Of a stretch of 64,000 nt of DNA, positions 1-54,163 are shown piece after piece (position 1 is the first letter of the stretch; each line of letters begins with the position of its first letter). This stretch comes from Macrostomum lignano (Eukaryota): assembly GCA_002269645.1 (NCBI GenBank), contig NIVC01000535.1, positions 63,757 to 127,756 on the forward strand. Reading direction: 5' to 3'. A program made the translations under genes and the position numbers. The notes beneath the pieces were generated by a model that was given only the letters and a program-made list of their open reading frames with translations, was not told where the DNA came from and searched no databases.

Positions 1-425
1 CATGTAAAAATCATAGAAACATCAGGTAAACAATCATAGAAGTGTCATAAAAAATCATAGAAGCATCATGTAAAAAATCATAGAAGCGTCATGTAAAAAA
101 ATCATAGAAGTGTCATGTAAACAATCATAGAAATATCATGTAAACAATCATAGAAGCGTCATAAAAATTATAGAAGTGTTTTGCCGAAAGTCATAGAAGT
201 GTCATGTGAAGAATCATTGAAGTGTCATATAAACAATCATAGAAACGTTATATAAACAATCATTGAAGTGTCATGTAAAAATCAGAAGCATCATATAAAA
301 AGTCATAGAAGCGTCATGTAAAAAATTATAGAAGTGTCATATAAAGAATCAAAAGCGTCATGTAAAAAATCATAGAAGTGTCCTATAAAAAATCATAGAA
401 GTGTCATTTAAAAAATCATAGAAGT
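1..425. repeat. Degenerate ~20-23 bp tandem repeat (consensus ~ catgtaaaaaatcatagaagtgt), running off the window start
   Basis: Recurrent atcatagaagtgtcat / gtaaaaa motifs. The same motif reappears briefly at ~856-880, after the LINE insertion. Confidence 0.85.
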
Positions 426-436
426 GTCCTTGACAA

Positions 437-822
437 CAATAACAACAACAACAAGGTACTGCTCCCGCCGGCCACACAGTAGCCAGTAAGGGGGGAGCAG
501 TCAGAAAGTGTGTCTCTGGACCATTGCCCTCAGGAAGTCGCATCCCCCTGCTTGGTCCAGGGCGCCAGCGTCACTCAAGTCTGTCAGGGTATCACACCAT
601 TTGCCCTTGGCCTCGCCTCTGCGGTCCCTGCAGCTTGAGTAGCAGCATGTCGTGTAGCGGCTCAGGACAGTGGGCCTCCAACCGGATGACATGGCCAGCC
701 AGTCAAAGTTGCTGTCCGCGCAGCAGGTCAGAAGGCCGCATCAGGCGCACCCTAGTGTAGAGTGCAGCATTGGTCTTGCTGCCTGGGCCACTGCGCACTC
801 CAAAAGCTGCATGCCGTGCGGC
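437..822 (-). mobile_element. 5'-truncated RTE-like non-LTR retrotransposon 3' end, with (TTG)n tail and 11-bp target-site duplication
   Basis: Minus-strand frame reads AAFGVRSGPGSKTNAALYTRVRLMRPSDLLRGQQL*LAGHVIRLEAHCPEPLHDMLLLKLQGPQRRGQG, resembling the RTE ORF2 C-terminal 'L-GHV-R...G-R-RG' motif. Tail is (caa)n on + at 437-453. gtccttgacaa flanks both sides (426-436 and 823-833). Confidence 0.75.
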
Positions 823-1859
823 GTCCTTGACAAAAGAAGCATTATGTCAGACAGAAAGTGTCATGTAAAAAATTTCATATGAAACTGTGTGCTGTGACTC
901 TTAGGGAGAAATACTTTTGATCTCAAAGCTTATGGGGGGAATAGCTGAGATGTCAAGGCTCATGGGAGAATAACTGAGATGTTAAGGCTAAGTCAGAAGC
1001 TATATATAGTTAATTCAAAACTTTTTATTACATTATTTGTTGCCTTATCATAGGGGAGTATGTTAAGGCTTGTGGGGGGGGAATTGCTAACATATCAAGG
1101 CTTACAAGGGACTGCTAAGGTATATTGCAAAGAGACACTACATGTAGTTTATTAAACTTGTATTGCATTTTTTTGGCTCCCCAATAGGGGGCACTAATTG
1201 CTAGTTGGGGACACTAAGCAATTGGGCGCAATTAAAAAGACTTGGCAGTTGGCATTGATGAGCATTCATAACCCTTATTTCAAGTCACTTATCTATATTG
1301 TCAAATTTGTCATCTCATAGAAACATTATTTTCCTAATAAAAGAGCTTGATGGGTACAACATTCCATTTATTTAAAAAACACAGCTGCACTAAAGGCATA
1401 TTCTTAAAAAAAGGAGATAGCTGGTATAGTCAAATCTGATTTAGCTAGCTCTACTAGCTTGGGAAGGTCAGTGCTATTAGATTTCTAGAATTCACAAACT
1501 GGAATTTCAAAGTTTTTCTAGGCCAGACTTCAGTACAATGATAGTTGGTTGGTGGCCTTGCAAGGAATCTCTTTTTTTTCAAGCTGTTTGCAGTTGTAAT
1601 AGATAATCCTGAAGTAGATCCATTGGCCTCACTTTGGCACTCTTGCAGTGTTATTCTGGTAGAATAGCAAAATTGCAAGAACTTGCTACTGCCTTCTTTA
1701 TTTTAATTTGACTCTTGATTTGCCTATTTGCCTGTGATTATCATGTAGGCATGATTCATTCTATCAGTCCACATGTCTATCATGAAATTGATAACATTTG
1801 GCATTTTAAAATATATCTTTTAGAAAAGCCACTTGCTCTTCAAATAATGAGGCAACTCA

Positions 1860-3620
1860 ATGTGACACCTATTGACTTGGGGCTATATAGCCTAACATAG
1901 CCATTGCAATGAAGCCTGTTATGCCTTTTTTATGGAAATCACCAAATGAGTGACTATCTTGGATAATTGCCTTTATAGCCACCTTGTCTAACTTCTTTAC
2001 AAAGGCACTGAAAAGTAGATGAGTTCTAGGCTTGACAGGTCCCCTGGTCATAACAGTAATAAGAGTGTTAGAAAACTACCAATAAGCTTCACTTGCTTCA
2101 TAGAAGTTAAAGGCTTAGGAGCAGAAGACTGCTCATTTTCCTCACTAACTATTAGGCTTAGTATACTAGACTTAGAAATAGAAGCTAGAACTTTGCTACT
2201 AGTACTTTCTTTAGTAGAAACTAACTTATGCTGACTTCGGAGGTGGTTTAACATTGATTTGGTAGAACCATCCTTTTGAAGCTTAATTTTTGAATTGCAC
2301 TCCTTACAAATGGCATGCTGTTTATTAGCTGCTTTTATAAAATGTTTCCAGATATTAGACTTCATGAATGCATGGCAGTGTTGCAATTGTAGCTTAGCTT
2401 AGCAATATAATTTGTTTTAATGGCAGCTTGGCAGATGACTAAGTAAAGTAGTTGAAATGATTGTATATTCAAAGTAAATAAATTGTGTATAAGAGAAATA
2501 TTTTAATAAAAAAATCAGGGATTCAGGGATTATTATTTTCTTAAAAAATCCCATGTAGACAATGAATACTTAAGGAAAACCATTAAAAATTTGATTTTGT
2601 TCTTATTACACATAGTATACTAACCAAATAGGCTTAAGGCTTAATTATAAAATTTATTCAATTAATTAACTAAAAATAATAATTTTATGAATATCAATAT
2701 ATGCTTTTATACAAAAACATAGGAATAAAAAAGTACTATGGCCTTATATTCTAATGAATTGGCAATAAAATAAAATACAAATATACTTCATTTTCAAAGA
2801 TTTTGTTGAAAGTCTTGGCTCTTAATCCATGGTTAAAAGTGGTTAGTACATTTCTATCTATAGCATAATGATCATATTTTCTAAAATTAGTTTTTGTGTT
2901 GTAGCTTTAGTTAAACTAAATAAATTAAAAATAAATTTTAATTAAAAAAACTTAAAATGCATCTGGCTGGCTAAACTAAAAATAATAGGCCTAGTAGGTC
3001 TAGGCAATTGTGAGGCTAGGCCTAGGCATATTTTTTTAATACAAACAATTACTTAAGAAGAACAAAAAGAACAATGTACTTAGGCTACTATTCTAATACT
3101 ATGCCATATATATAATTATTAAATAGTACTTAATAGATAGTATACTATAGGTATAGTCATTAGTGGGGTGTTTAGTTAAATTTATCTGACAACTGCAACA
3201 TAAGCTACAACTAGGGGGGCCTACAAGCCACAACCCTCAGTGTAGGACTACAATTAATTGGCTAGAATTCTGGAAGCATAATTATGTTTCAATACAGAAT
3301 AGAATTAACAGTAACACTATTATATTTAGGTCTAATAAAGGCTGAATATTATGATATGGAATGCCAATTTGCTAAATGACTGTCAAAATGTTGATAGGTG
3401 AAATCAGAAATGTCACAGGATGATGTGCTATTGTTTTGAAGTTTAAAAATTTGCCTTTTATACTAAGTGTTACATGATGACATTAGGAGAGATTAATTTT
3501 TAAAATAGCTAGTTTATTTTTCATTTAAACCTGAACCTGAACATCCTACCTACCCCAAACCCAGTACCAAACCTGACCCAAAACCTGACCTGACCCCAAA
3601 CCCTGAATACCCTTAATAAC
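1860..3620 (-). mobile_element. Decayed hAT-superfamily DNA transposon (BED zinc finger and transposase N-terminus, plus subterminal repeats)
   Basis: ORF 2048-2386 has a zf-BED motif IWKHF...AICKECNSKIK...GSTKSMLNHLRSQH. The next frame reads AIIQDSHSFGDFHKKGITGFIAMAMLGYIAPSQ, resembling hAT 'D-xPF...G...F...P-Y-xPS'. 3525-3610 has cctgaacctgaa/acctgacc motifs resembling deaminated CCCGAACCCG subterminal repeats. Boundaries are approximate. Confidence 0.7.
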
Positions 3621-4085
3621 TATATAGCATTTTTGTTGTAAAATTTATAAGGATGTGTACGTATAGATTTATAATTAGTGTTTGCCTAAATGGGGTCCTA
3701 CTATAGATGTAGCTGTTGTAAAAACATTTTTAGGCTTTTTGTTATATTTTTACTTTCTCATTGATCCATGCTACCATTTTGATGTAATGTTTCATTTTTC
3801 CTAATAAATAGTTTAAAATAAATAAAAACTAGGGCTTGTTGTTTTCTGTGGGTGTATTTTCAACAGCTATAGGTACCCATTTTACTATAGTTGCTGTAGT
3901 GTTTTTTAGCTATATCTAAAAGTGAAACTAGAAGTTAACTAACTGTAAATGAGTCTTAATTCAATGATTGCTAAGTGGTAGAACATTATTAATCATACTC
4001 ATGCAACTGTTATCTGCCTGAATAGCTTGGTCATAATATTAACAACGAAGTACTAACTATATCAGCTGTCATCAACACACTAATA

Positions 4086-6688
4086 ATGGAAGAGATTGGC
4101 CTGCCCCCTTCCGGTTCGGACAAGGAGCTTTCTGATTTGTCCTCGGCCACTGATTCTGCTGTCCGGCCGGGCAGCGGCCTATCAGCTGTGCCTCCAGATC
4201 CCACTCAGCTGGATTCGGACGATCTGTTTGTCCGACTTAAACGTCTACAACGCGAGCTGGAATTCCTGGATGTTCAGGTAAAGTTTACAGTTAATTAACT
4301 CATTTGTCGAAGGTTTTTTTTTATTTGGGTCGCTCTCGCCTCACCATGCATACACGAGTTGATCCAATACATGAACTACAGGTAGTGAGGTACAGTGGCT
4401 GTGTGCACAGTCTTGAGTACATGTACTGGGGTAAGGTGGCTGTGTACGCAGTCTTGAGTACATGTACTGGGGTAATGTGGCTGTGTACGCAGTCTTGAGT
4501 ACATGTACTGGGGTAAGGTGGCTGTGTACGCAGTCTTGAGTACATGTACTGGGGTAATGTGGCTGTGTACGCAGTCTTGAGTACATGTACTGGGGTAAGG
4601 TGGCTGTGTACGCAGTCTTGAGTACATGTACTGGAGTAAGGTGGCTGTGTACGCAGTCTTGGGTACATGTACTGGGGTAAGGTGGCTGTGTACGCAGTCT
4701 TGAGTACATGTACTGGGGTAAGGTGGCTGTGTACACAGTCTTGAGTACATGTACTGGGGTAAGGTGGCTGTGTACGCAGTCTTGAGTACATGCACTGGGG
4801 TAAGGTGGCTGTGTACGCAGTCTTGAGTACATGCACTGGGGTAAGGTGGCTGTGTACGCAGTCTTGAGTACATGCACTGGGGGGAACAGTGGCTGTGTAC
4901 ACAGTCTCCAGTACATGCACCTTGGGTAACAGTGGCTGTGTGTGTACTCTAGACACTTTCAAATAGTGTTTTATTGATGCAGAAACTTTGGCATCTGGTT
5001 GTAGCGTAAAAAGTAATCTACACTACATATCGGATAGCGACAACGATCTCGGGAGTCGGGGATGATGGTTTCAAATTGGTTTAGCTTCACAGTTTCATCA
5101 TATTAATTGACTGACAGGAAGGCTACGTGAAAGACGAGCAGAAGAATTTAAAGAAGGAATTCCTCCACGCCCAAGAGGAAGTCAAACGAATCCAGAGCGT
5201 GCCGCTGGTTATTGGCCAATTCCTCGAGGCTGTCGATCAGAACTACGGCATTGTGGGATCCACAACCGGTTCTAATTATTATGTCCGCATTCTGAGCACG
5301 CTGGACCGCGAGTCGCTTCGGCCCAGCGCCTCTGTCGCCTTGCACAAGCACAGCAACGCTCTGGTTGACGTGCTGCCCCCCGAGGCCGACTCCAGCATCA
5401 GCATGCTGTCAGCCGATCAGAAGCCAAACGTCACCTATGCCGACATTGGCGGTATGGACATACAGAAACAGGAGGTGCGCGAGGCCGTTGAACTGCCGCT
5501 GACTCATTTTGAACTCTATCGTCAGATTGGCATCGATCCGCCTAGGGGTGTGCTCATGTTCGGGCCGCCTGGTGAGTTCATTTTACACGTGAATGGGGCG
5601 TAGCCTAGCGTCCTAGGCTCGATTCCAACTGCAGTCTAGTTAATTTAGGGCTAAATTAGAATCTCAGCTTGGATCTGCTCGTAAGGCAAATTCTATGTAG
5701 TAAACGGTAGCTTTTAGTTAATTGGTTATTCATTTTGTCGGAGCTACACCTGCAAAGTTAAGCAAAGTTAGTCGCGGTTAGTACGCAGCTGAATAAAATG
5801 TCTGTGTGAGAGCGAGTGTTAAAGACGAAAAATCTAAAAAAATAACTAAATTTCAAACTTAAACTTGTAATAAGCTAGGACCGGTTGCTAGGTGCCTCCG
5901 CTCTTCATCAGCTGGTCTAGCTTCTCAGATCAGCTAGGACCTCACTTGCAGTTTGTCCAAGGTGCTATTTTTAACAATTTACAGAAGAAAAAATAAAACA
6001 CGTTACTTTCTACTCCATTCAGGTAAAATAATGTTATATTTTTTTCATAAAAACAGGCACAGGCAAAACTATGCTAGCCAAAGCGGTGGCCCATCACACC
6101 ACGGCCGCTTTTATCCGGGTTGTTGGCAGCGAATTCGTGCAGAAATACCTGGGCGAAGGGCCCCGCATGGTGCGCGACGTGTTCCGCTTGGCAAAGGAGA
6201 ACGCGCCGGCCATTATCTTCATCGACGAGGTGGACGCCATCGCTACTAAACGGTTCGACGCCCAGACTGGAGCCGATCGAGAGGTTCAACGCATCCTGCT
6301 CGAGCTGCTCAACCAGATGGACGGCTTCGACCAGACCGTGAACGTCAAGGTCATCATGGCCACCAACCGGGCTGACACGCTGGACCCGGCGCTGCTCCGC
6401 CCGGGCCGGCTCGATCGCAAAATCGAATTCCCAATGCCGGACAGGCGGCAGAAGCGCCTCATCTTCCAGGCCATCGCCGGCAAGATGAACCTGTCAGACG
6501 AGCTGGACCTGGAGGACTACGTGGCCAGGCCGGACAAGATCACTGGCGCCGATATTAACGCCATCTGTCAGGAGGCCGGCATGCAGGCTGTGAGAGAGAA
6601 TCGCTACGTTGTGCTGCCTAAAGACTTTGAGAAAGGCTACAAGGCCAGCCTGAAGAAGGACATGCAGGAGTTGGAATTCTACAATTGA
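4086..6688 (+). CDS. PSMC4: 26S proteasome AAA-ATPase regulatory subunit 6B (Rpt3); 3 coding exons 4086-4277, 5118-5571, 6057-6688
   Basis: Splicing restores LEFLDVQ|[27 protein letters not shown] and Walker A GPP|GTGKT; Walker B IIFIDEVD; [28 protein letters not shown]. Canonical GT/AG junctions with consistent phases. Confidence 0.97.
4395..4945. repeat. 41-bp minisatellite (~13 copies) in PSMC4 intron 1
   Basis: Unit gtggctgtgtacgcagtcttgagtacatgtactggggtaag, containing the palindrome agtacatgtact. Confidence 0.95.
5596..5690 (+). mobile_element. 5' fragment of SINE family B in PSMC4 intron 2
   Basis: ggctcgattccaactgcagtc...ttagaatctcagcttggatctgctcgt matches the head of the 48781-49146 element (ggctcgattccaagtgcagtc...ttggaatctcggcttggctctgctcgt). 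Confidence 0.6.
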
Positions 6689-7204
6689 TGCTATTTGCTC
6701 CGTGTCTGCTGTCATGCCCTTTCTTCTGTTCTATCCATGCAAACACACTTATAAATGACAATATAGAATATTTGTTTGTCAGCACTGCTCTTACAGTATC
6801 CTAGTGGGTCTTCGGGGGGGGTACATTTTCTAATGAATAATTAACAAAAGTCAATTAGACTCCGAACTAAAATTTAATATAATTTGTTTCTACCTGCGGC
6901 GCCGTGCATTTTAATTATCCCCAAGTTATTTCGTGTACCGTCAGTTTCAGTTTGCACCTGTTCCATCAGTAGCAGCATCCATTAGTAACCGCCACTTATG
7001 TTATTTAATATCCGGTATATGAATTTGTAATAACAGTCGGGTGAGTTGATCGCACTGTGCCTGCCTAGTTTGACTGGCATAGCAGAAGCAGATAATAAAT
7101 TAATGTATGCCTGGCAATTGACCGCGTTATGTATTTGTGTTTCTCTTTGTGTTCTTGTTTTTTTGTATTTTTGGGCTTAATAAAGAGTCTAGTTGTGATG
7201 CACC

Positions 7205-7885
7205 ATAGTATCCTTCTAAAGTCGGTCAGATCCCGATGGAAAGTCAGCACTTGTGTTAAATCTCTGATAGAAGGTCAGCATGTCAGATCCCTGATTGAAA
7301 ATCAGCGCCTCGTGTCAGATCTCTGAGAGAATGTCAGCACCCCGTGTCAGAGCCCTGACGGAAGGTCAGCACCCGTGTCAGATCCCCGAGGGATGGTCAG
7401 CACCCGTGTCAGACCACTGATGGAAGGTCAGCACTCACTGTGTCAGATCCCCGAGGGAAGGTCAGCACCCGTGTCAGACCACTGATGGAAGGTCAGCACT
7501 CACTGTGTCAGATCCCCGAGGGAAGGTCAGCACCCGTGTCAGAGCCCTGATGGAAGGTCAGCACCCGTGTCAGAGCCCTTATGGAAGGTCAGCACCCGTG
7601 TCAGAGCCCTGAGGAAAGGTCGGCACTCACTCTGTGTCAGACTCAGATCCCCGAGGGAAGGTCAGCACCCGTGTCAGAGCCCTGAGGGAAGGTCAGCACC
7701 CGTGTCAGAGCCCTGAGGGAAGGTCAGCACCCGTGTCAGAGCCCTGATGGAAGGTCAGCACCCGTGTCAGAGCCCCGAGGAAAGGTTAGCACCCGTGTCA
7801 GAGCCCTGATGGAAGGTCAGCACCTGTGTCAGAGCCCTGAGGAAAGGTCAGCACTCACTCTGTGTCAGAGCCCCGAGGGAAGGTT
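7205..7885. repeat. ~31-bp minisatellite between PSMC4 and PSMD14
   Basis: Unit gtcagcacccgtgtcagagccctgatggaag with cactcactgt variants; degenerate at the left edge. Confidence 0.95.
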
Positions 7886-7968
7886 TAACCAGTAGAAGAG
7901 GCTGCAATAGAAGACGAATCCAGTGCAAACCATATTGCAAAACACTTGCAGTTCTAACAAGCACCGGA

Positions 7969-9586
7969 ATGGACCGACTGCTTCGTCTCGGCGCCGCTGG
8001 CGGTCTTGGCTCGCTCGGCCAGACGGCCGCACCGTCGGACGGCCCGATGCCGGACACGGCCGAGCAGGTGTACATCAGCTCGCTGGCGCTATTAAAGATG
8101 CTCAAGCACGGCCGAGCCGGAGTACCCATGGAAGTCATGGGCCTAATGCTGGGCGAATTCGTTGACGATTACACGGTTACCGTTGTTGACGTGTTCGCCA
8201 TGCCGCAATCTGGCACCGGCGTCTCTGTCGAAGCTGTGGATCCCGTATTCCAGGTGAGTTGTGCAGTGACTCCTTGTAGGATGGCGGTTGTGGCTCTCAG
8301 ATAGAGGACCAGTGATTCTCAGATAGAGGACCAGTGACTCGCATGTGTAGGACCAGTTTCTCTCAGGTGTAGGACCAGTGACTCGCATGTGTAGGACCAG
8401 TTTCTCTCAGGTGTAGGACCAGTGACTCGCATGTGTAGGACCAGTTTCTCTCAGGTGTAGGACCAGTGACTCGCATGTGTAGGACCAGTGACTCTCAGGT
8501 GTAGGACCAGTGACTCTCAGATGTAGGACCAGACTCCCAGCTGTTGGACCAGTGACTCTCAGGTTTAGGACCAGTGACTTTCAGATAAAGGATCAGTGGC
8601 TCCCAGATGGAGGACCAGTGGCTCTCAGATAAAAGACCAGTGACTCTCAGATGAAGGACCAGTGACTCTCAGATGTAGGACCAGACTCCCAGCTGTTGGA
8701 CCAGTGACTCTCAGGTTTAGGACCAGTGACTTTCAGATAAAGGATCAGTGGCTCCCAGATGGAGGACCAGTGGCTCTCAGATAAAAGACCAGTGACTCTC
8801 GCGTGTAGAACCAGTGACTTTCAGATGTAGGCCCAGTGACTCTCATTTTAGGCACAGTTGCTCTTTATTAAAGGATCTGGGGACAGCGGCAAAAAGCAAA
8901 AATCTATTAATCCACCCCCTCTTTCACAGGCCAAGATGCTGGACATGCTGAAGCAGACGGGCCGACCAGAGATGGTAGTGGGCTGGTACCATTCGCATCC
9001 GGGATTCGGCTGCTGGCTATCCGGCGTTGACGTGAACACGCAGCAGAGCTTTGAGGCCCTGTCCGAACGAGCCGTGGCCGTTGTGGTGGATCCAATCCAA
9101 TCTGTGAAAGGCAAAGTAGTGATTGACGCGTTCAGGCTAATTAATACCAATATGGTGATGCTGGGCCAGGAGCCCCGGCAGACCACTAGCAACATCGGTC
9201 ACTTGAACAAGCCGTCAATTCAGGCGCTGATCCACGGCTTAAACCGGAACTATTATTCAATACCGATTAACTTTCGCAAGAACCGGCTGGAACAGGCTAT
9301 GCTAATGAATCTGAATAAGCGCAGCTGGCAGGACGGCCTGGCGCTGTGCGATTTTACTCAGCATTGCAAGGACAACGAGTCTACGGTTAAGGCTATGCTG
9401 GACCTCACCCGCTCCTATCACAAAGCGCTAGAGGACGAGCGCCAGATGACTAAAGAACAATTGGCCGTGAAAAATGTTGGCAAAATCGATCCGAAGCGTC
9501 ACCTGGAGGAGCAGGTTGACGGCTTGATGACGGCTAATATTAGCCAGTGCCTCGGGTCCATGCTGCATTCGGTTGTGTTCAACTAA
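7969..9586 (+). CDS. PSMD14: 26S proteasome lid deubiquitinase Rpn11 (JAMM/MPN+); 2 exons 7969-8253, 8930-9586
   Basis: MDRLLRLG...[34 protein letters not shown]...VDPVFQ|[34 protein letters not shown] with an intact JAMM motif. GT/AG phase-0 intron; AATAAA at 9605-9610. Confidence 0.97.
8300..8845. repeat. ~21-23 bp minisatellite in PSMD14 intron
   Basis: Unit aggaccagtgactctcagatgt with higher-order variants. Confidence 0.9.
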
Positions 9587-11377
9587 TTTGCTTTTTTATT
9601 ACATAATAAATCTCTAGCTGTGCTAATGACTGGGTTAACTTTCTGTTGAAAAAAAATAATTAAAATGCGCAACACACTACTGGGGGTTGTGCGATTCAGG
9701 CATGAACTAATTGTCGTCTATCGTAGTTTACGAGTAATCCTTCCCAGCTTATTCCTGCCTAGTTGTCTCCAGACTCTCTCAGCTATTCGAATGTCCCAAG
9801 TTTTGTGCATGTATCGTTTTTTCTATGCTATAATTATATAGTCATGACGCTATCCGGTACTAACTCTAATAACTTAAAGAGTACACCCTCGCATAGGCAA
9901 AATCGGCTTGGTTCCAATTATCAATAAACGGGTTATATGTATCGCTTGAGTTTCGAGTGGATTTGGCAAAAAAGCGCAAGTGTAAAACCGATCAATATTT
10001 CTTCTTTTGCAATATGCAAAATATTTTGATCGTGGCCGTAAATTATTGCCTTGCTTTTTTATTTCAAGAATTTAACCATCTAAATTTATTCTCTATCATT
10101 TTTATTAGAATTCAGGATATGCAGCTAGCAGGAGGAGTGTCAAGGATTTTATGGTAGGGGGCGACACTAAGAACTCTAAACGAAAAATTCCTATATAGTA
10201 TTTTGAGAATCGGTGTTAGCGTGTTGGTGACTGATTTTTGCGCCGCAGGTACTTTCAATTTGGCACCCTGAAGCAAATTCTTGATTTCCATAATGGATCA
10301 CAATTTCGGTTGGGGAGAACAGTATGTAATTGATAATATCAGTTTTTACATACTCTGAGAGAATATCTTTTTTAATCGTAAAAAATCGATTTTTTCATAT
10401 GTATTATTTTAGTGTGGTTGAGTAAGTTTAAAGAATTCGATAGAATGGGCTACTTATATACATGTGAAATTAATTGTTTGACTCAACTGCGTGCGTGGGT
10501 ACCAGTCACTTCATTGTTTTTTACGCATATTTACAATGTGCATTTAATGTATAGCATAAAAATTTCGGACACAAAGCGAAAAATTTTTAGATAAAACTAC
10601 ATACGGCCATTATACATGAAGTACCATGATCTTACTGGTGACTACTTAAGTCGTTCTTGATTACGGATGAGACCTAAGATTTTAGGTGTTTTCTTTAAAT
10701 TATTTTTCAATTTTTTAAATCTTAAGAATAATTAGTATTTCAATAAAAAAGCTTTTTTACTTACGGAATAAATCGTCGGATGGGTAAACTGTTCCGTGTA
10801 TCCTAACTTCAGTGGTCCTTGCATCAGTCCGAAATGATAGAGGCCACAATTTTGTAGTGTGGTGCTTGTGTCGCGATACCCTTGATTATGAATTTTATAT
10901 TAGTAGTCTCAATTGTATTAGGCATGTACAGTAATTGGATGCAAAGCATTACAAAAAGCTTGCCCTTTTGTTTTTTTATTGCGAATTTTAAACCCGATAA
11001 ACAAAAAAACCTTAAGCTTTTAGAAATAAAGATCGCCAATAAAAAGAAACTAACAGCAATGACTTTGTATAAAAAAATAATGAAAATTGTTTTTCCCGGC
11101 TTTCCATTCTTATTTCTCAAAAATCTAAGAGCGGTTTTTCGTACTTAGAGAAATGTCAATTTTTTAAGATGCTTGATCAGCTGATTTCTTAACCTTTTCG
11201 CGCCGGAGCTAGAAATACAAAAGCTCCGTTCCTGCCGACATGGTCAGCTGGGCTGACCTTAGACTATAGCTAGAATCTAATTGTGCCCCTGTGGCCCTGT
11301 GCAAAGCCTTTCTAGCCGAGAAGGGAGCATTTTGTACTCGGCTTGGACAAATCTAGTCCAAGACCTTTTAAACTTTG

Positions 11378-11474
11378 TCCGACTCGGAATATTCCGACCA
11401 TTATTCCGACCTGTAATGCCGCTAATGTGGTTTAATTACCAGTCGGAATAATGGTCAGAATATTCCGACTCTGA
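11378..11474. repeat. Imperfect ~40-bp inverted repeat (17-bp spacer), probably a transposon terminal/subterminal structure
   Basis: tccgactcggaatattccgaccattattccgacctgtaat (11378-11417) versus attaccagtcggaataatggtcagaatattccgactctga (11435-11474). Further attccgact motifs continue to ~11530. Confidence 0.7.
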
Positions 11475-11539
11475 TTCCGACTGATAATTTAATTCGTTGC
11501 AAGAGTCTAAATATCATCCCGACTCTTATTCCAACTGAT

Positions 11540-13245
11540 CATTAAATACAAGCAATTGAGTCAGAATTTATCAATTCTATATTTAGAAAACTTGGAACTT
11601 TATGTTTATTCAGTGTTTATTTAGTTTAGCTCTAAGTAAAAATACATATTAGGCCTAGTTAATATTTAAAACTTTTTTTGACAAATTTTTTATCTTTACT
11701 TTTTAGCAGTTTAGACCCTGTTTAGCAGTTGCTACTATATAGGAAACAACTTTAATATTCTATATTATGTTTACATTATTTACTTTGTTTACTATACCTA
11801 CTATAATATAAGATAAAAAATTAAAGACATTGGCTATAGTAAAAATAAGGGTCAGATATGATGATCACAATTGTGATTACAATTTGTGAATTCATGACCA
11901 TTTTTTTACAATTGTGATTTCCTTGAAACCCATTTATGAGGTATGTGAATTTCTGCTTAGGCCTACTTTTTATTTAAATTATAACTTTTTATTTGATTTA
12001 CTGAAATAAAAAGGTAAACACAAATGTATAAAACAGTAATAGGGCCCCTAAATTTTACATTTGTTGACTTGACAGCATTATCAAGTAGAGGCCTATCTAT
12101 GAGTATTATCTAATATAAAATGATTTTTTTCTTGTTTTGTTATTTTTAAGGCCTATTTTCTACACATTTAACTTACAAGCTTGTAAAACATGTATGCATA
12201 ATAAATAAAAGAGAAAGAAAAGACTATTGACAATTTAATATCATCTTTTATAATAGCAATTATAACATAGTGTCCATTTTGGCATGAATTTGGCAGGAAT
12301 ATAGGTCTAATTCAGATTTTGTATAAATATATAAATATAAATTCACAATCAATCATGCCTAACTTTAAAAAATTTAAAAAAATTCATGCCTAACCAAAAT
12401 TTTCTGCTTGTCAAACCTCTGATAAAAATAAGAGAAATATATATTCTTGTGTTGTCCCTTTGACCCTTCATAGATCTTAAGTCTTAAGCTTGCCTTTTAT
12501 GATTAGGCCCTATGAATATTATTGCAAATGTTTTTATTAATATTTATTATTAGTAATTAAATTTAAAGTTATATTATATTAGATATAAACTAGGATGAAA
12601 ATTTTATACAAAATCCTAAATGCAAAAAACTTACACATTTTGTATGCCCATTATTAGCAAATTCCTGCAGTTGCATACACTTTTTATAAAAAAATCATTT
12701 GTAAAAAGAAAGCTGGAAATTAGGATGAATTATTTGAAAAGGGTTGTATTCCACTTGTGATATATAAAAACTATTTTTGCATATAAGAGGCAATTGGCTT
12801 CGCAAAAAGGTCCTTATGAGCATATAAACCAAAAAGTAACAGTAATGATGTTCAAAATTTTATTTATTTTTATAGCATTTATAGATAATAAATAGTCCCT
12901 ATGCAATTTTATCAAAGACCTAGAATTAAAATAAGTCAATTTTTATAAATAGTTTATTAAAACATTTAGCAATGTTTAGTAGACCTAATAGTAATCACTA
13001 TTATTAAATAATATACTATCCATTTTGATTTTATTGTTTATTTGAAATCAAATGATTTATATATACAACATTTGGTCTGATTTTGAAAAAAACTACTATT
13101 GTAAAGCTTTATATAATCTTGATTGATAATTCTATCTATAATTGTATATTATCCTCCTGTTTATCATAAAATTTCTATGATATCCTTATATTACTCTATT
13201 ACCACACATCAAAGTAGCAAAAAATAATGCTCTAGAATAAGTCTC
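11540..13245. mobile_element. Very AT-rich, CpG-erased block; probable ancient transposon relic of unassigned family
   Basis: About one CpG seen by eye in ~1.7 kb, no ORF >60 aa, and it abuts the 11378-11474 inverted repeat. Confidence 0.3.
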
Positions 13246-13248
13246 TAA

Positions 13249-13717
13249 AAGAGTAAGCCTCCCTACTCATCTGCATTCTTGAGAGTAAGCCTCCCTACTC
13301 ATCTGCACTCTTGAGAGTAAGCCTTCCTACTCAACTGCATTCTTGAGAGTAAGCCTTCCTACTCAACTGCACTCTTGAGAGTAAGCCTTCCTACTCAACT
13401 GCATTCTTGAGAGTAAGCCTTCCTATTCATCTGCACTCTTGAGAGTAAGCCTTCCTATTCATCTGCACTCTTGAGAGTAAGCCTTCCTATTCATCTGCAC
13501 TCTTGAGAGTAAGCCTTCCTATTCATCTGCACTCTTGAGAGTAAGCCTTCCTATTCAACTGCATTCTTGAGAGTAAGCCTCCCTACTCATCTGCATTCTT
13601 GAGAGTAAGCCTCCCTACTCATCTGCATTCTTGAGAGTAAGCCTCCCTACTCAACTGTATTCTTGAGAGTAAGCCTCCCTACTCAACTGCATTCTTGAGA
13701 GTAAGCCTCTCTACTCA
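13249..13717. repeat. 32-bp minisatellite (~14.5 copies) just upstream of MEMO1
   Basis: Unit gagagtaagccttcctactcatctgcattctt. Confidence 0.95.
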
Positions 13718-13814
13718 ATTCAAGCAGATATAAAAAGAACACAAATAGCTGCACACAGATCAGTTTAGCTACACCAAAATACCAAAAACAATCTGTTCAT
13801 TCGCACTTCAGAGC

Positions 13815-15183
13815 ATGGCATTGCGCAGGGCAACTCACGCAGGCAGCTGGTACACTGACCGGCCAGACCAGCTGGACCAGCAGCTCACCAGTTGGCTGGC
13901 CGCTGCCGGACCCCGCGTCGGCGCCGCTCGGGCCATCGTGTCACCCCATGCCGGCTACCAATACTGCGGAGCCGTGGCCGGCTACGCCTACAAGCAGATC
14001 GACCCCGGCCCTATCAGCCGGGTCATCCTGCTCGGGCCCAGTCATCATTTCTCGTTGCGCGGCTGCGGCTTGTCTACCGCCGCCGAGTTTCAGACGCCTC
14101 TGGGCAACCTGCGGGCGGATCAGGCCACCACTGCTGAGCTGCGGGCTACTGGCCAGTTCGAGATGGTGAGGAAGAGTTGAAGGCCTCTGTTTACTTCTTT
14201 ACCTATTGAATTGTCCTCAGTTGACCTGGTCTTGACCCAAACTTATCCTTAGTTGACCCAGTCTTGACCCAAATTTATCCTCAGTTGGCCTAGTCTTGAC
14301 CCAGATTTACCCTCAATGTACCTAGTCTTGACCCAAAATTATCCTCAGTTGGCCTAGTCTTGACCCAAACTTATCCTCAGTTGATTTGGTCTTGACCCAA
14401 ACTTATCCTTGGTCTTGACCCAAACTTATCCTCAGTTGACCTGGTCTTGACCCAACTTATCCTCAGTTGACCTGGTCTTGATCCAAATTTATCCTTAGTT
14501 GACCTGGTCTCGAAGTTGTCGCCAATTGACCTGTGGTTAGCCCTGTTTATCCTGCTCAAATCTGTACTCAACCGACCCTACTAAAACTGCCATGTTCACT
14601 TAGTTCTCGTAACTTGACCTCGTTTGACCAGATCTGACCTCTGACCCCCAAATCTCAGGTGTCGCTAAACCGCGACGAGGCCGAGCACAGCCTGGAGATG
14701 CAGCTGCCCTTCCTGCTGGCCGCTATGCGCCCGAAATCGCCTCGAGACTTTTCGATCGTGCCAATCATGGTCGGCGCCATCGACCCGTCGGTTGAGGCCG
14801 CCTACGGCGCCGTGCTGGCCCCCTATCTGAACGACCCGGCCACTCTATTCGTGGTGTCGTCCGACTTCTGCCACTGGGGCCGGCGATTCGAATACACGCA
14901 CTACGACAAATCCGCTGGCCGGATCTGGCAGAGCATCGAACGGCTGGACCGGCAGGGCATGGAGGCCATTGAGACCGGCCGGCCGGACAGGTTCACCCAG
15001 TACCTGCAGCAGACTGGCAATACCATTTGCGGCCGCCACCCCATTGGCGTCATGATGTGCGCCGCCGCTCGCCACGGCTCCGGTCGATTTCGATTTCTCA
15101 ATTACGCCCAATCGTCCAAGTGCAACGATTTCTCCGATTCGTCTGTCAGCTACGCTGCCGGGGGCTTGTTTGTTAACGCCTAG
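13815..15183 (+). CDS. MEMO1: Protein MEMO1 (AmmeMemoRadiSam protein B family); 2 exons 13815-14165, 14659-15183
   Basis: MALRRATHAGSWY, IVSPHAGYQYCG, LLGPSHH, GQFEM|VSLNRDEAEHSLEMQLPF, VVSSDFCHWGRRF, NTICGRHPI, YAQSS...DSSVSYAAG. GT/AG phase-0 intron. Confidence 0.95.
14215..14510. repeat. 32-bp minisatellite in MEMO1 intron
   Basis: Unit cctcagttgacctggtcttgacccaaacttat. Confidence 0.9.
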
Positions 15184-15189
15184 GGGCTG

Positions 15190-15420
15190 GCTGACCTTAA
15201 ATGACCTTTAACAATTACCTTAAATGACATTTGGTAATAGAGACGACAGCTGATTTACCTTCAATGACCCTAGATAAACTGAGCGACCTTAAATGACCTT
15301 TAGCAGTAGAAACAACCTTAGTGACCTTAAATGACCTTCGGCGAGTTAAATGAGCTTGACCTTAAAATAACCTTTAACAACCACTTTAAATGACCTTTGG
15401 TAATAGACGACAGCTGGTTT
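15190..15420. repeat. Degenerate (gaccttaaat)-type repeat 3' of MEMO1; a related block at ~15885-16110
   Basis: Recurring gaccttaaatgacctt motifs. Confidence 0.6.
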
Positions 15421-17749
15421 ACCCCACAGATACTAAAGTAACTAGGTGGGCCACTCAGGCATATATACTTAGTAAAATAGCTTTCTACTTTCAGCTCAGT
15501 AGCAAAGAAGAATACGTAAGCTTCTTACGTATTTTATAAAAATAAAGGCAGCTGAAATGCCTTTGATAAGTTTAGAAGCCCAAGCTTGCAGGCGTAAACA
15601 ACTTGCTAATTGGTTCAGCAATAATGTACATTAGCCAGTCCACTGAAATGTACATAGCAGCCTTAGGCTGAAAGTTCGAGAAGGCAATAAAAATTGGGGC
15701 TGGCAGGGGTGGTAGTGTGGAAAGGCGCGTAAGAGCCAATAAATTGAACCTTGGCTTTAAAAATACATTAAAATGCCTCTGTTTAACTTACTACTGAACT
15801 GAAAGTAGCTTACACGCAAATGTAAGCTACTTTCTATGTAGAAAGTAGTTCTATGTACTTGCTATGTAGAAATACCTTGCTAAGTGACCTTAAATGACCT
15901 TTGGCAGTCGAAACAACCTGTTGTTTAACCTTAAATAACCTTTAGCGAACTGAGTCACCTTAACTAAATTTGGTAAGGACAGTCAGCTGATTGGCCTTGA
16001 AAACTTAAAGTTAACAAAAGTTTGTTAAAATGACCCTTCTTGACAAACTAATCCATCTTAATCTTTGGTGTTACAAAGAACCTGTTGGTTGACCTTGAAT
16101 GACTTAAATGGCTTGATCGGTAATACTGATAATCTAGCTGTGCTACTTTTATCAGTAGAGCAGGTAGATAAAGTTTGTTGAAAGTGTCTAAATACCATGC
16201 ACCTGACTATTCAATTTAATCGTCGTTTTCGATTTTAATTATCTGCTTTTGCACAGTGTGTTTCTATTTATCGGAGCATGAGCTCAATTTATTTACCGTT
16301 GCACTGGTAGAATTCAGCCTAATAACTGCCTAACATAAGTAGTGCTACTTTTATCAGTAGTCAGTAACACGATGATATTGATGCTACTTACTGTTTTATA
16401 TTGATGCCTTTATACCCGACTGTGTGTTTTTCTAGCACTGAGTAGCATCACCGCAGTTGCAATCTGATCCGAGTCAAGTAATAAAACCCCAAGAGCAGTG
16501 TTGAGCTTTCAGTGGAAAATATCTTTCAATATTAACTGCTTGTTCGTGATTTATTATTATTGTTGTCTGCTAAATAACAGTATGGTTTGCTCTGAGTTGT
16601 TGTCAGTCTTTAAATAAACATTTATTAGGTAATTAAATTTGCGTTTCTATGACTAATCTTTCCATAAAACTGTTTTGAATGATTTTTTGTTGTTTTTTAA
16701 CGTTAATTTATAAGTACTGGCAGTTCGCCACTCGCTACTTAAAGTAGCCAATTGTAGTGCACGCGTAAATTTAAAACTAGACGCCGCGCTTGAACAATAT
16801 AATTATTACTAAGCTTATCTTATCTTATCAATTACCGATAGGTTTTGCTTGTTTACGACCTTCAATACGCTCAGCTCAGTAATGCTGTGTGTTACTCTTT
16901 TACTGGATTGGTAGGCTTCCTCATTTAACACCAAATTCTCTCAATATCTCACCTTCTAGACTTTTGAGAAGGCTCCGTAAGACTGCTAGACTAGAATCCA
17001 ATGCTTCTAGTATATCCGGAAAAGTTTCTTTTATAACATTTTTTCTGGACAAATTTGTTCTTGACAGTGTTTGTCTGTGGTGAAGCCTCATTAAACTTAA
17101 CTTTATTAGACTTTCCTAGCGAGCTCTTTGTTTCATTTACGTGAATAATTTTTCTTTGTGTGTGTCTTTACAGCTTTGTTGTCCATGTAGTTCTGTAACC
17201 ATTTAATGACCGATAATTTTTTTTATTAATATCCGCAAAGTGCAATTTTTGTCGAATAATATTCAGGATTACAATAAAAACAGTGACGTCATGCATAGGC
17301 CCGAATGCAAAGTGAATGCGAAATTCTCTTGTTTATATATTTGTTATCAGGTGAAAATACATAGTAAAGCCATCATTGCTGTATCCGTGTGTTTCTCAAC
17401 TATTCAATTTAGTTTATAATTGTCATTAAATTTGTTAGTCGTTTTTTTCGGATTATTTCTTTAAAATCTGACTGAAAACACCTGATCACTAAGTGCTTTT
17501 AGATGCTATTTACCAAGCAATTGCGTCATCATTTAAGGCCTCCAGTTCATTCATTTCATCAAGTCTCTATCTTGTTGAAGGTCCTTAAAGTGCCAAAGCT
17601 ACTTGAGACTGATAATAAGCAAGAAATTTATGCGTCATAGTTGCTGCAGGTTTTAATCAAAGTTTGATATTTTTGTATCTCAAACAGATTGCTTGATCTT
17701 CCGACCCAGAAAAGACTCGGAATAAACTTTTTATGCAAAAATTCTGTCC

Positions 17750-17962
17750 TTGCCGGACTTGCCGGACCAAATTGTCTGCAATCGGTAACTTGCCGGACCG
17801 AATTGTCTGCAATCGCGGTAACTTGCCAAACCAAATTGTCTGCAATCGCGGTAACTTGCCGGACCAAATTGTCTGCAATCGCGGTAACCTGCCGGACCAA
17901 ATTGTCTGCAATCGCGGTAACTTGCCGGACCAAATTGTCTGCAGTCGGTAACTTGCCGGACC
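17750..17962. repeat. 33-bp minisatellite (~6 copies)
   Basis: Unit cttgccggaccaaattgtctgcaatcgcggtaa. Confidence 0.9.
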
Positions 17963-18850
17963 AGTCGACTAGACATAGTCAGATGTTGGGTACCTCCCAT
18001 GTCCATGACGAGGGTCTCTAATAAAACCTAAGGTTCGTTCAGGATTTCTCGATTAGGATCGCATGGATCGCGCAGGCCTTTTCCTGTTTGTTTGTCTTTC
18101 GTCATGATCGGATGATAATATACTGATGACGCCAGTCTCAGTCTGACATTCAATGATCTGCAGCTTGGCCATTGCTCTTTGGAAGCGTCCCGACCATTTC
18201 ATAATCATGGACAATGAAGTAAAAGGACGTCGGCGCTTTTATTCGACTGATCCGGCAACAAGATACCGATTTCAGACGTGATGTAGTGCAGATTGACAGC
18301 TTATTCAAAGAGTATAGGTACCTTTTAGAAAGATGTAACATCCGAAGCGTAGGTTTACTGTATTTCGACATGTTTTAACCTTAACCTATCTTAATTAGGT
18401 TGAACGTAGAAGATGAAAGGCTCTTATATCTTTGTTGCCTGTACTTTTGTGAGCGGACCCTTGGAGAACCGGAAATCCGGTCAACTTCTCTTTGTCAAAA
18501 ATAATTGAAAACCTCATTTTGCCTGCTGAGCCCTGCAGCTCTGTCTGCTTGTGCCCGAGTGTGTAAAAATGAGAAAATGGATGGAAATCGTTACTATATG
18601 AAGTCATATAGCTTGATTAATAACACTCAGCGCTAAGAGATCGTGCACGTTGCAGTGTGTGAGCTGATTTTTCAAAGTACGAAGTATATTTATATATTTC
18701 GCAGCCGTTCACGATTCATGCTCAGTAACTTTCAAAAGCCCCTTCGAGTCCCGCGCTTCTCTCGCCACTGCAACAGGATTTATAGATTTGGAAAGCTTGG
18801 GAATCGAGTCTATTTTAGGGGCGAGTCAAAGAGTCGAACTCGGGATCTTC

Positions 18851-19240
18851 TCAGGCCAGGCCGCCGCCGACTGACGGGCGGGGAAGCCGCGTTCGCTTGC
18901 AGTCGGCCATCATGAACTGGTAGTCAATGCAGCACCTGTTGAAGGTCGGCCGGTGGAACAGTTGGGCCGACGAGCGGTCCCGCTTCCAGGAGCACAGCAG
19001 GCAGTTGGTGTACTCCTGGGTGCTCTCGCAGTAGCCCTCGATCGCCAGGTCCTCGGCGTCGACGAAGTCCACGGCGTTCGTAGCCGAGACAGCGGGCGTC
19101 CGCGCCAGCGCCAGAAGCAGCGCGCAAAGGCAACAGTTGGCAAACAGAAAAGTGTTCTGCAAGAGTTTGTTCACCGATTTACTTGGTGAGATGAAAGGCC
19201 GAAACATTACAAAGATACTGCAAAGTCCGTGACTTACCAT
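18851..19240 (-). CDS. Secreted 102-aa six-cysteine peptide precursor (neuropeptide/hormone-like); coding exon 1 is ATG only (19238-19240), exon 2 is 18851-19156
   Basis: ATG is followed directly by a perfect gtaagt donor and an 81-nt intron ending ctcttgcag. Splicing gives MNTFLFANCCLCALLLALARTPAVSA (signal peptide) + TNAVDFVDAEDLAIEGYCESTQEYTNCLLCSWKRDRSSAQLFHRPTFNRCCIDYQFMMADCKRTRLPRPSVGGGLA*. Exon is GC-rich; CCAAT box near 19433. Confidence 0.75.
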   Translation of the reverse strand: MVSHGLCSIFVMFRPFISPSKSVNKLLQNTFLFANCCLCALLLALARTPAVSATNAVDFVDAEDLAIEGYCESTQEYTNCLLCSWKRDRSSAQLFHRPTFNRCCIDYQFMMADCKRTRLPRPSVGGGLA

Positions 19241-21466
19241 CGCTGCAGCTCGGACTCGCTGTTGATATTTGATTTTTTCGGAATTATTTTTTCTCTACAA
19301 CGCGCAACGGAAACTGCCTTGTCGAAGCGGCCCGATTTCGCCCTTTTTATGCCTTTTTTTACGGGGCCGAGCCGGAGTTGGCGTCTTCGCAATGGCTCGC
19401 GTTTTTCAAGCACTGCTCGGACAGCTTCTGATTGGCTGGCCACGCAATCTGCTAGTTTAGAGCTGTGCTTGCAACAAGTCTAGATGTGCAGTTGAAAGGA
19501 TGCTAATGTTGAAGTTGCATGTCGCGAGACTCTCTGAGACTCAACACCTTGAAAAGACGTAATACCTACAAAACATAATAAAAAGCAAAATGCTTGAAAG
19601 TTCAGAAGGTTAAATAGTCGAACGCATTGCCGCTCGGCCATCTGAGCTAACTAATTTATGTCAGCTGCATGCCAAGAGTACTGAACTAACCTAATAAGCT
19701 TTTGTATTCTACATCAGTAGATGGAAACTAGACTTTTTGTTATAAATTTTCCAAGAAACGAATGGCTCTTGAACTTATTGTTGGCACATTGAAATCATGC
19801 GGCAAAATCTGAAAGGTCAGGTTTGAAAGCTATACAAGCCGTACAAGTATCACGCCTGTCTACTTGGTGAATGAGCCTCCGCCAATATCCTTGAACGATA
19901 GACTAGCAGTCCAATTCTAATTAGTCATTTCGTCTTGAATTAATTGCACAAAGACAGAAGCAGTTCCCTCGGCAACTATGTAGGCGTAGGCATGGAAGAC
20001 TGACTGAAGAGCTGCACCATCGACCAAAACGTAAATTGGGCATCGTCTGGCCGACCGGAAGTGCTAACCGGAATTGTGACGTACTTGAACATCGGACACC
20101 TGCTTTCAAGTAGCCCAACCCTTGTTGTTGAGAAAACTATCAGAAAATTTGTCTCATACCCAAATTCCATAACTGCCTAATTCAACAAAGAATGCAGATT
20201 ATTCTTAATTGAAAGCAGCTTTATTTTTAGGTGTTTTTTTCTCAGAAAATATGCAATGTTCGGGAGGACACAGGCAGGGTTACCCGCCTACAGACTGCTC
20301 TGCGGTGATTAAAGACTCCTGCTGTCATTCGGTAACCTAGCCTGTAATTATCACCTGCAATAACAGTTATCATAATTATCACAAATGGAAAGCTGAAACG
20401 CTCAAAATACAGCTGCGTTTTCTAAAAAAAAATGTTTTGCATAGATTTGCCTTTTTGGATAGCGCTGACTGGGGTTTCGTCATCGACAAACTCAGTGGAA
20501 AAAGCTCCACGACAAAGCAATGGATTGAAGAGACGGTTTTCCGCGGTTTCCAGAAGCATTTCGTGGAAACACAGACTTGCTTTATTAGTAATTCTGTTGA
20601 TCATATGACAGATGTTATGAATTTACGCGTCCTTCTAGTTTAGTTGACATCAGGGTTAATTATCTTCTAGTTTTCGGTTCTATGTTGCCGGGGGGCATAC
20701 GTTCATAATACTGCTAATGAGTCCTACACGTAATCTTCAAGTTCACAATTTGCAATTGTGTGCCACGGAAAACAGGAAAATACTCAATCAACGACTGTCG
20801 TGACATCCGATTTTCTGATTCGCCTGTTTTAAATCAAGCATATTTTCAGCCAGCGAATTATGCTCGTATTTGTTTCGAATATTTTATTCTAATTTTAACA
20901 ATATTTCATACCAAATTGCATATTTTTATCAGAAATTCGGGGCAATATGAGAGGCAAAATGAGAGAGGCATGAAAATGATTTCTTCGAATATTACACGAC
21001 TTGCAGGCTTTTATGAGTAGTTTGAATATTGTTATTATTATTTTTCCTCTTATTATTGTTATTAAATGCACACGCCACGAGGGTGCTGATATTTTATTAT
21101 ATTATTAAGGCAAACAAATTAATACAGCGCAAGAAAAAAAGAAAAAGTAAATTAATAAAAATGGTTTTCGACGAACGGTAGTCAAAATATAATCTCGTAC
21201 GCAAACAGAGAATTCGAGAATCGACTGACCTTATTTTTTCGGTACTCGAGGCAAGTTTCAGTTGAAGAGCCCCTTGTTCCATCCAGCCAGAGAAATTACG
21301 AGTACTGAGATCCTGGCCCAACGCCTTCGCCGACATGGTCTTACAACCAGCGCTGAGGCAATTTTGGCCATTCCGCTGGCTCCTGAGCACATGCAAGCGT
21401 GCCAATACTGTACGCTGGCACAGCACTCACACAGGCTGTACAGCGGCACTGACTTTATAATCGTCA

Positions 21467-22372
21467 GGCATGTACACTCTCTGCCCCTCTCAATGTACAT
21501 TGCCTATCCAGAGCATGCCCACTCACTGCCTCTCTCAATGTACATTGCCTTATCCAGAGCATGCCCACTCACTGCCCCTCTCAATGTACATTGCCTATCC
21601 AGAGCATGCCCACTCTCTGCCCCTCTCAATGTACATTGCCTATCCAGAGCATGCCCACTCTCTGCCCCTGTCAATTTACATTGCCTATCCAGAGCATGCC
21701 CACTCTCTGCCCCTCTCAATGTACATTGCCCATCCAGAGCATGCCCACTCTCTGCCCCTCTAAATGTACATTGCCTTATCCAGAGCATGCCCACTCTCTG
21801 CCCCTCTCAATGTACATTGCCTTATCCAGAGCATGCCCACTCTCTGCCCCTGTCAATGTACATTGCCTTATCCAGAGCATGCCCACTCTCTGCCCCTGTC
21901 AATGTACATTGCCTTATCCAGAGCATGCCCACTCTCTGCCCCTGTCAATGTACATTGCCTTATCCAGAGCATGCCCACTCTCTGCCCCTGTCAATGTACA
22001 TTGCCTTATCCAGAGCATGCCCACTCTCTGCCCCTGTCAATTTACATTGCCTTATCCAGAGCATGCCCACTCTCTGCCCCTGTCAATGTACATTGCCTTA
22101 TCCAGAGCATGCCCACTCTCTGCCCCTGTCAATGTACATTGCCTTATCCAGAGCATGCCCACTCTCTGCCCCTGTCAATGTACATTGCCTTATCCAGAGC
22201 ATGCCCACTCTCTGCCCCTGTCAATTTACATTGCCTTATCCAGAGCATGCCCACTCTCTGCCCCTGTCAATGTACATTGCCTATCCAGAGCATGCCCACT
22301 CTCTGCCCCTGTCAATGTACATTGCCTATCCAGAGCATGCCCACTCTCTGCCCCTGTCAATGTACATTGCCA
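21467..22372. repeat. 45/46-bp minisatellite (~20 copies)
   Basis: Unit atgtacattgcc(t)tatccagagcatgcccactctctgcccctgtca. A single-T indel distinguishes the sub-blocks; this array explains the spurious long ORFs. Confidence 0.95.
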
Positions 22373-22674
22373 AGAATGCCCCACCTCCTTTAGTCTTTTT
22401 CAGCCCTAAGCCAGGGAACGCTTGCACGAAGCCTGGAACTATGTGTACGTAATTTCAAACAGAGGGGCGAATAAAATTCTAAGGAGGAGAAACGGCAGGT
22501 CAATTAGCTTGATGATGACAATTGCTGCCTAATTTCCTGAGAGCTGTCACAGTTGAGATAACGCAGAGCTCAATGCTATTATTGAAGAGACTCACGAAAG
22601 ATACTAAAAATAGCATAACAGAACCATCGATCAGCAAGCGAACTTTTGCTGCCCTGAATCTGGCTCTGCATTGC

Positions 22675-40147: not shown

Positions 40148-50924
<10,777 letters not shown>

Positions 50925-53756: not shown

Positions 53757-54163
53757 TACTAAAAATTCCAATCTATTTTCTGATTAATATTGGCTGGACA
53801 ATATAAAATAACTCATTCAACCCCATATCCCGTCAATCCACTTCCGTGAACACTGTCCCAGCAGCAATTTCATTAGCATTGAGCAGTCATTCTGTTTGTA
53901 CACCCTGGGCTGTGTGTTGGCCATCCAAACATCCCTGTTTGTCCCCACGGCCTTGCAAATCCCATCCCAGCTACCTTCCTGGGAACGGAAGCGAAAGTGT
54001 GGGCTCGTATTTCCAAATCGAAAGCAGAATTTCTCTCACAGAGCAGACTATGCGCGCACATGGGCACATGCTTTCTTAAGCCTTGTGCAGACAGTTCCGT
54101 CGGATGATGAGGACAAACTTTATACCAGGATATTCAGCTCGTACCTGGCTGTTTCTTTACCTA

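Follow-up and report, generated by a model that had tools for sequence, protein, structure and literature searches.

A probable spliced-leader-resolved PSMC4-PSMD14 operon in the flatworm Macrostomum lignano

Genes and spacers at the locus

The final 64,000 bases of contig NIVC01000535.1 of the flatworm Macrostomum lignano (assembly GCA_002269645.1, Mlig_3_7; this whole stretch is called the window here, and adding 63,756 to a window position gives the coordinate on the 127,756-bp contig, to which window bases 1-19586, the part compared, are 100% identical) carry the genes of two subunits of the 19S proteasome particle, PSMC4 (Rpt3) and PSMD14 (Rpn11), side by side and followed by MEMO1. An earlier note, made from the letters of the window, regarded the three genes as a candidate functional operon resolved by spliced leader (SL) trans-splicing. 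The part of this proposal that joins PSMC4 and PSMD14 holds up as the probable reading, based on a common annotation prefix, a trans-splice acceptor, SL-bearing transcripts of congeners and the intergenic distance, whereas the membership of MEMO1 and the claim of a functional unit do not. The co-orientation of the three genes was correctly recognized: hand-built models from open reading frames (ORFs) and canonical GT-AG junctions confirm three intact genes, all on the plus strand, for which orthology and Pfam domains agree. PSMC4, the 19S base ATPase of 425 amino acids, has its coding sequence (CDS) at 4086-6688 (exons 4086-4277, 5118-5571 and 6057-6688) and contains the domains Prot_ATP_ID_OB_C, AAA and AAA_lid_3; it is 80-89% identical to its top matches among animal proteins named "26S proteasome regulatory subunit 6B". 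Its translation reveals intact Rpt3 motifs, namely the Walker A sequence GPPGTGKT, Walker B and an HbYX-type FYN at the C-terminus. PSMD14, the lid deubiquitinase of the JAMM type, is encoded at 7969-9586 (exons 7969-8253 and 8930-9586; 313 amino acids) with the domains JAB and RPN11_C, a JAMM motif that reads as intact in the translation, and 78-83% identity to its top matches among animal PSMD14 proteins. MEMO1 (13815-15183; exons 13815-14165 and 14659-15183; 291 amino acids) has a Memo domain and is 52-57% identical to animal MEMO1. The deposited M. lignano proteins BOX15_Mlig012618g1, BOX15_Mlig012618g2 and BOX15_Mlig020933g2 are 100% identical to our models of PSMC4, PSMD14 and MEMO1, respectively.

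The end of the PSMC4 stop codon (6688) and the PSMD14 ATG (7969) are separated by exactly 1,280 bp on these models, as had been stated before. Neither strand has a called gene in this interval, and scans of the window for Rfam families and tRNAs were empty. The spacer does contain the minisatellite that had been put at about 680 bp, its measured size being 660 bp: it occupies 7225-7884 (plus strand) and consists of 20.7 copies of a 31-bp unit with 81% matches and 58% GC according to Tandem Repeats Finder, and it is present in both genomic copies of the locus, the second of which is described below. Its unit holds the nuclear-receptor half-site AGGTCA; 14 of the 27 plus-strand copies of this motif in the window fall here, which may be coincidence. 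Further, unrelated minisatellites were found at 4377-4941, 8290-8845, 13250-13717 and 14214-14510, and the remainder of the window contains at least ten more. They make up 565 of the 840 bp of PSMC4 intron 1, 556 of the 676 bp of the PSMD14 intron and 297 of the 493 bp of the MEMO1 intron. Since nearly all transcribed non-coding spacers at this locus consist mostly of minisatellite, the intercistronic spacer is structurally intron-like.

Transcript signals between PSMC4 and PSMD14

The public annotation already bears on the transcription of this locus. It was built from RNA-seq data assembled into "transcriptional units", about 7% of which are multi-gene precursors; these were divided into genes where experiments had mapped SL and poly(A) sites, and units more than 95% identical were given a common name prefix (Wudarski et al. 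2017, PMC5730564). PSMC4 and PSMD14 carry the locus tags BOX15_Mlig012618g1 and g2, i.e. one unit prefix, and because the two genes are unrelated in sequence, the same prefix indicates that they were cut from one assembled RNA unit. The deposited annotation thus already names the PSMC4-PSMD14 unit implicitly. MEMO1 illustrates how else a prefix is used, since Mlig020933g1 and g2 designate two genomic copies of the same gene. A duplicate of the locus on contig NIVC01001210.1 shows PSMC4 and PSMD14 in the same order as Mlig006117g1 and g2. It is 93-98% identical to the locus in coding and non-coding parts alike, spacers included, hence the agreement reflects recent common ancestry rather than independent retention and gives no independent support. 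For the same reason footprinting of the spacer against the duplicate was uninformative.

The single SL of M. lignano is 35 nt long, CGGTCTCTTACTGCGAAGACTCAATTTATTGCATG, and is joined to acceptors with the motif [T/C]TNCAG (Ustyantsev & Berezikov 2021, PMC8629364). Upstream of PSMD14, the sequence TTGCAG at 7946-7951 on the plus strand fits this motif; no other match occurs within 1 kb ahead of the ATG, the duplicate retains the site, and the predicted mRNA body would begin at 7952 with a 5' untranslated region (UTR) of 17 nt. The deposited, 5'-partial PSMD14 CDS PAA81373.1 opens with LTSTG-M at 7954, which is the first in-frame codon past TTGCAG, 2 nt after it. A putative acceptor also precedes PSMC4, read from a branch-point-like TACTAAC at 4051-4057 and a CAG at 4063-4065 on the plus strand; it would place the beginning of the mRNA body at 4066 with a 20-nt 5'UTR, and the acceptor region is identical in the duplicate. 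If the SL, which ends in AUG, were added at these sites, it would open an upstream ORF of two codons (AUG UUC UAA, 7952-7971) on the PSMD14 mRNA and one of six codons (4066-4088) on the PSMC4 mRNA.

Transcripts of congeners show the leader itself. The PSMD14 RNA contigs of two diverged Macrostomum species (L002 and L003 from one, L005 from the second) start with the 3'-terminal 12-25 nt of the SL, which pass straight into the 5'UTR, and a PSMC4 mRNA of the second species (L006) likewise opens with SL sequence. Identity to M. lignano at third codon positions is 54-63% in these congeners. No SL-like sequence is encoded in the 64-kb window even when three mismatches are allowed, hence any leader on the M. 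lignano mRNAs of these genes would come in trans. Contigs of the ERR10172xxx series (84-85% identity) are without the Macrostomum SL and were dropped from the comparison. RNA contigs of M. lignano for these genes were not found in the protein and contig collections searched. The UniRef model A0A1I8JCP5 from M. lignano has 99 nt of unspliced sequence across the PSMD14 acceptor and reaches the edge of the minisatellite; because it crosses the acceptor, outron RNA exists in assembled form. At the other end of PSMC4, the congener contig L007 stops 13 nt past an ATTAAA, and L006 from the sister run extends about 60 nt more, possibly by read-through beyond the poly(A) site.

Regarding 3' end formation in M. 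lignano, canonical poly(A) signals past the PSMC4 stop begin with the AATAAA at 7094-7099, 405 nt downstream, so that most of the unique spacer sequence is probably PSMC4 3'UTR (6689-7120 on the plus strand, the end being approximate and the poly(A) site predicted). This AATAAA is also the sole poly(A) signal kept in both genomic copies, a further one at 7179 being absent from the duplicate. For PSMD14, the candidate signal is the AATAAA at 9605-9610 (plus strand), the first after its stop codon. The transfer of poly(A) sites from the congeners was rejected, because their UTRs are too diverged to be aligned with the M. lignano spacer. A consensus cis-donor-like GTGAGT at 7041-7046, within the putative 3'UTR of PSMC4 and ahead of the 7094 AATAAA, is kept in the duplicate. 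If paired with the acceptor at 7951, it would allow a bicistronic mRNA to form by cis-splicing, in competition with trans-splicing.

In M. lignano, 30% of the genes are SL-spliced, about 15% are predicted to be in operons, which are rich in conserved genes, and 75% of the operons comprise two genes (PMC8629364). In that study operons were defined as co-oriented neighbours with an SL-spliced downstream gene and less than 1 kb between them after subtraction of repeats, which inflate the spacers of this species; the distance distribution is bimodal and its repeat-adjusted mode lies near 100 bp. The distance from the PSMC4 stop to the PSMD14 acceptor amounts to 1,263 bp, and subtraction of the 660-bp minisatellite leaves 603 bp, which is below the published limit of 1 kb. 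When the conserved AATAAA is taken as the starting point, with an assumed poly(A) site near 7115, the repeat-adjusted distance to the acceptor is roughly 170 bp, i.e. not far from the reported mode.

We therefore regard PSMC4-PSMD14 as probably an ordinary two-gene, SL-resolved operon of M. lignano. RNA polymerase II would start upstream of PSMC4 and transcribe both genes. The PSMC4 mRNA would be cleaved and polyadenylated about 430 nt past its stop codon, probably at the AATAAA at 7094, and the roughly 830 nt of spacer that follow, of which the 31-bp minisatellite makes up four fifths, would be discarded. Trans-splicing of the 35-nt SL onto TTGCAG at 7946-7951 would then yield a capped PSMD14 mRNA with its 17-nt 5'UTR. 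For M. lignano itself the read-through, the poly(A) site, the SL addition and the absence of an internal promoter are inferred.

Several observations weigh against this operon and could be accommodated by two independent genes. In such a scenario PSMD14 has a promoter of its own in the 1.26-kb spacer, either in the unique part or in the minisatellite, and produces a monocistronic mRNA that is SL-trans-spliced, while the common unit name is due to an assembly merge of a long PSMC4 3'UTR with the overlapping outron of PSMD14 that starts from the internal promoter. About 60% of those M. lignano genes that are SL-trans-spliced are situated outside operons (PMC8629364), hence SL addition by itself proves nothing. 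The spacer includes 536 bp of non-repeat DNA (6689-7224), which leaves room for a promoter and contains a TATAAA at 6752, and according to Wudarski et al. 2017 (PMC5730564) upstream regions of up to 2 kb are enough for promoter function. Furthermore, without repeat adjustment the spacer, about 830 nt, far exceeds the typical 100 nt. However, both duplicate loci were assembled as a single unit, the repeat-adjusted distance falls on the operon side of the bimodal distribution reported for the species (PMC8629364), and most of the unique spacer is probably taken up by the PSMC4 3'UTR, given the position of the first poly(A) signal. We consider two independent genes unlikely, though a serious possibility.

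MEMO1 and the pairing of two proteasome genes

The probable two-gene operon does not seem to extend to MEMO1. The acceptor-like site of this gene, CTTCAG (13806-13811, plus strand), is placed 3 nt before the ATG, and the UniRef model A0A1I8JDF9 from M. lignano begins exactly past it, at 13812. In this case the AUG of the SL would be in frame (AUG AGC AUG, 13812-13817) and would add Met-Ser to the protein. The deposited MEMO1 CDS PAA81374.1 (285 amino acids, labelled "partial") begins 18 nt into the ORF at 13833, with no AG before it. SL sequence was not seen on MEMO1 mRNA, the sole congener contig (L015) being 5'-truncated, and a homologue search recovered no further Macrostomum MEMO1 transcripts. 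From the PSMD14 stop to the MEMO1 acceptor the distance is 4,225 bp, made up of 3.7 kb of DNA with 30% GC and a minisatellite of 468 bp. The next called gene past MEMO1 (18851-19240) is on the minus strand, hence the co-oriented run ends at MEMO1.

A three-gene operon, as envisaged in the earlier note, would demand a precursor that crosses this AT-rich gap of 4.2 kb, with MEMO1 as third SL-resolved cistron. The co-orientation of MEMO1, a gap without any called gene, the consensus CTTCAG with a UniRef model starting there, and the statement of the authors that assembled units break in repeat-rich spacers (PMC8629364) are all compatible with such a precursor. The MEMO1 prefix Mlig020933, however, differs from that of the PSMC4-PSMD14 unit, and after removal of the tandem repeat and plausible UTR sequence the gap still measures at least 3.3 kb, well over the 1 kb of the operon definition. 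Interspersed repeats that could be subtracted in addition were not recognized in the spacers when these were compared with the window by self-BLAST, and an indel of about 0.9 kb separates the two M. lignano copies within the AT-rich gap (window 11654-11747 versus duplicate 13473-14468). A three-gene operon therefore appears improbable, and MEMO1 is most likely a separate transcription unit that is probably SL-trans-spliced too.

Elsewhere in the window, the minus strand contains an exon of an M13 (neprilysin-like) peptidase and exons with calcium-binding EGF repeats (29884-30759, 41425-42912), while long ORFs such as 21262-22452, 25793-26977 and 52356-53771 represent tandem-repeat artefacts.

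The second question is whether the neighbourhood of two proteasome genes has a meaning beyond operon formation. It had been argued before that chance adjacency is unlikely and that the pair may therefore be a co-regulated proteasome operon. If 33 proteasome genes are placed at random, two of them become co-oriented neighbours at least once with a probability of about 0.01-0.04 per genome. Yet the pairing was noticed post hoc, and when a dozen large complexes are taken together, 2-3 pairs of same-complex neighbours are expected genome-wide, so that the adjacency of PSMC4 and PSMD14 alone is only mildly unusual. The three genes PSMC4, PSMD14 and MEMO1 are not known to be linked in human. We compared the synteny in five lineages using called genes and tblastn within 10 kb around an anchor gene. 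Neither PSMD14 nor MEMO1 was present within this distance of PSMC4 in the cestode Hymenolepis diminuta, the trematode Schistosoma mattheei and the rotifer Rotaria sordida, and neither PSMC4 nor MEMO1 within this distance of PSMD14 in the monogenean Cichlidogyrus casuarinus and the trematode Opisthorchis felineus. The adjacency thus did not recur within 10 kb in the four other flatworms and the rotifer compared.

Both genes are instead found in operon-like clusters with other partners. In O. felineus (L020/L021 10001-21112), a co-oriented SMARCAL1-like gene with HARP and SNF2 domains starts 92 bp past PSMD14; an AATAAA is located 15 nt past the PSMD14 stop, and between it and the next ATG come a T-rich tract and TTTGCTAG. 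In R. sordida (L022 1-16588), PSMC4 stands between the genes of a USP8-like deubiquitinase and an RRM protein, with NMD3 ahead of the former; all four share one orientation, and their spacers measure 109-198 bp. Hence, in this SL-using rotifer a deubiquitinase of another family adjoins Rpt3.

It might be proposed that selection keeps the Rpt3-Rpn11 linkage as a means of coordinating the production of base and lid subunits. Such a view could refer to the low chance probability of a co-oriented proteasome-proteasome pair, to the fact that both products belong to the 19S particle, and to the arrangement being kept at both duplicated loci. These loci, however, are near-identical even in their spacers as expected from recent common ancestry, the adjacency is absent within 10 kb in Hymenolepis, Schistosoma, Opisthorchis, Cichlidogyrus and Rotaria, different neighbours are found in Opisthorchis (the SMARCAL1-like gene past PSMD14) and Rotaria (USP8-like and RRM genes flanking PSMC4), and a few same-complex pairs are expected by chance when the pairing is picked out post hoc. 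A selected linkage is distinctly improbable in our view. Highly improbable, finally, is the more specific idea that the Rpt3-Rpn11 bicistron is a macrostomid innovation under selection, in which one promoter would fix the proportion of base ATPase and lid deubiquitinase, for example in proliferating neoblasts (85% of whose enriched genes are SL-spliced), and the minisatellite with its 14 AGGTCA motifs or the GTGAGT at 7041 would tune the amount of the downstream mRNA.

Because no conservation of the pairing was seen elsewhere, the presence of two proteasome genes in the probable PSMC4-PSMD14 operon is argued to be incidental. Most likely it arose in this lineage as a side effect of the way conserved housekeeping genes come together in operons, and does not represent a conserved means of co-regulation. 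On the simplest reading, operons of SL-using animals readily take up such genes, and the present pairing is an accident of the Macrostomum lineage. If the bicistron is real, it nevertheless offers a testable case of two subunits of one machine under one promoter in an animal capable of transgenesis, which could address whether metazoan operons buy stoichiometric co-expression. For now the pair adds one instance to the approximately 10,000 M. lignano genes already predicted to be operonic, and its practical value is mainly one of annotation, i.e. precise 5' and 3' boundaries, together with the caution that anyone building a PSMD14 reporter should look for its promoter upstream of PSMC4.

Comparison with known operon systems

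The closest counterparts are the SL operons described for M. lignano itself (PMC5730564, PMC8629364). With these the PSMC4-PSMD14 pair shares the species with its single 35-nt SL, an acceptor fitting [T/C]TNCAG, the commonest size of two genes and a spacer swollen by tandem repeats as described by the authors (PMC8629364). Both genes are, moreover, conserved with human homologues, a class that is enriched among SL-spliced genes. Nothing structural sets the pair apart; only the participation of both cistrons in one protein complex is not general there. The pair was not singled out in the M. lignano literature searched, which covered full texts by locus name and supplementary tables.

In the SL2-type operons of Caenorhabditis elegans the precursor is likewise resolved by upstream 3' end formation and downstream SL trans-splicing, and two-gene units dominate. 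The typical spacer there is about 100 nt, whereas the raw spacer of PSMC4-PSMD14 reaches about 830 nt owing to the 660-bp minisatellite. Unlike C. elegans, M. lignano has a single SL without a specialised downstream leader, and no U-rich element is evident in the PSMC4-PSMD14 spacer.

Neodermatan flatworms also possess SL-resolved gene pairs in which the second gene receives the SL, for example the trematode enolase as second gene, and in Schistosoma mansoni the median intercistronic distance is 99 bp (PMC12582326). The pairing of PSMC4 with PSMD14 is missing within 10 kb in the neodermatan species checked, and in O. felineus PSMD14 represents the upstream member of another operon-like pair. 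Finally, an operon in a chaetognath, again an SL-using animal, reportedly unites ribosomal-protein, ubiquitin and proteasome-subunit genes (PMC12460157). It belongs to a different phylum, comprises nine genes and is of independent origin, but its proteasome-subunit genes show that the inclusion of proteasome genes in operons is not unprecedented.

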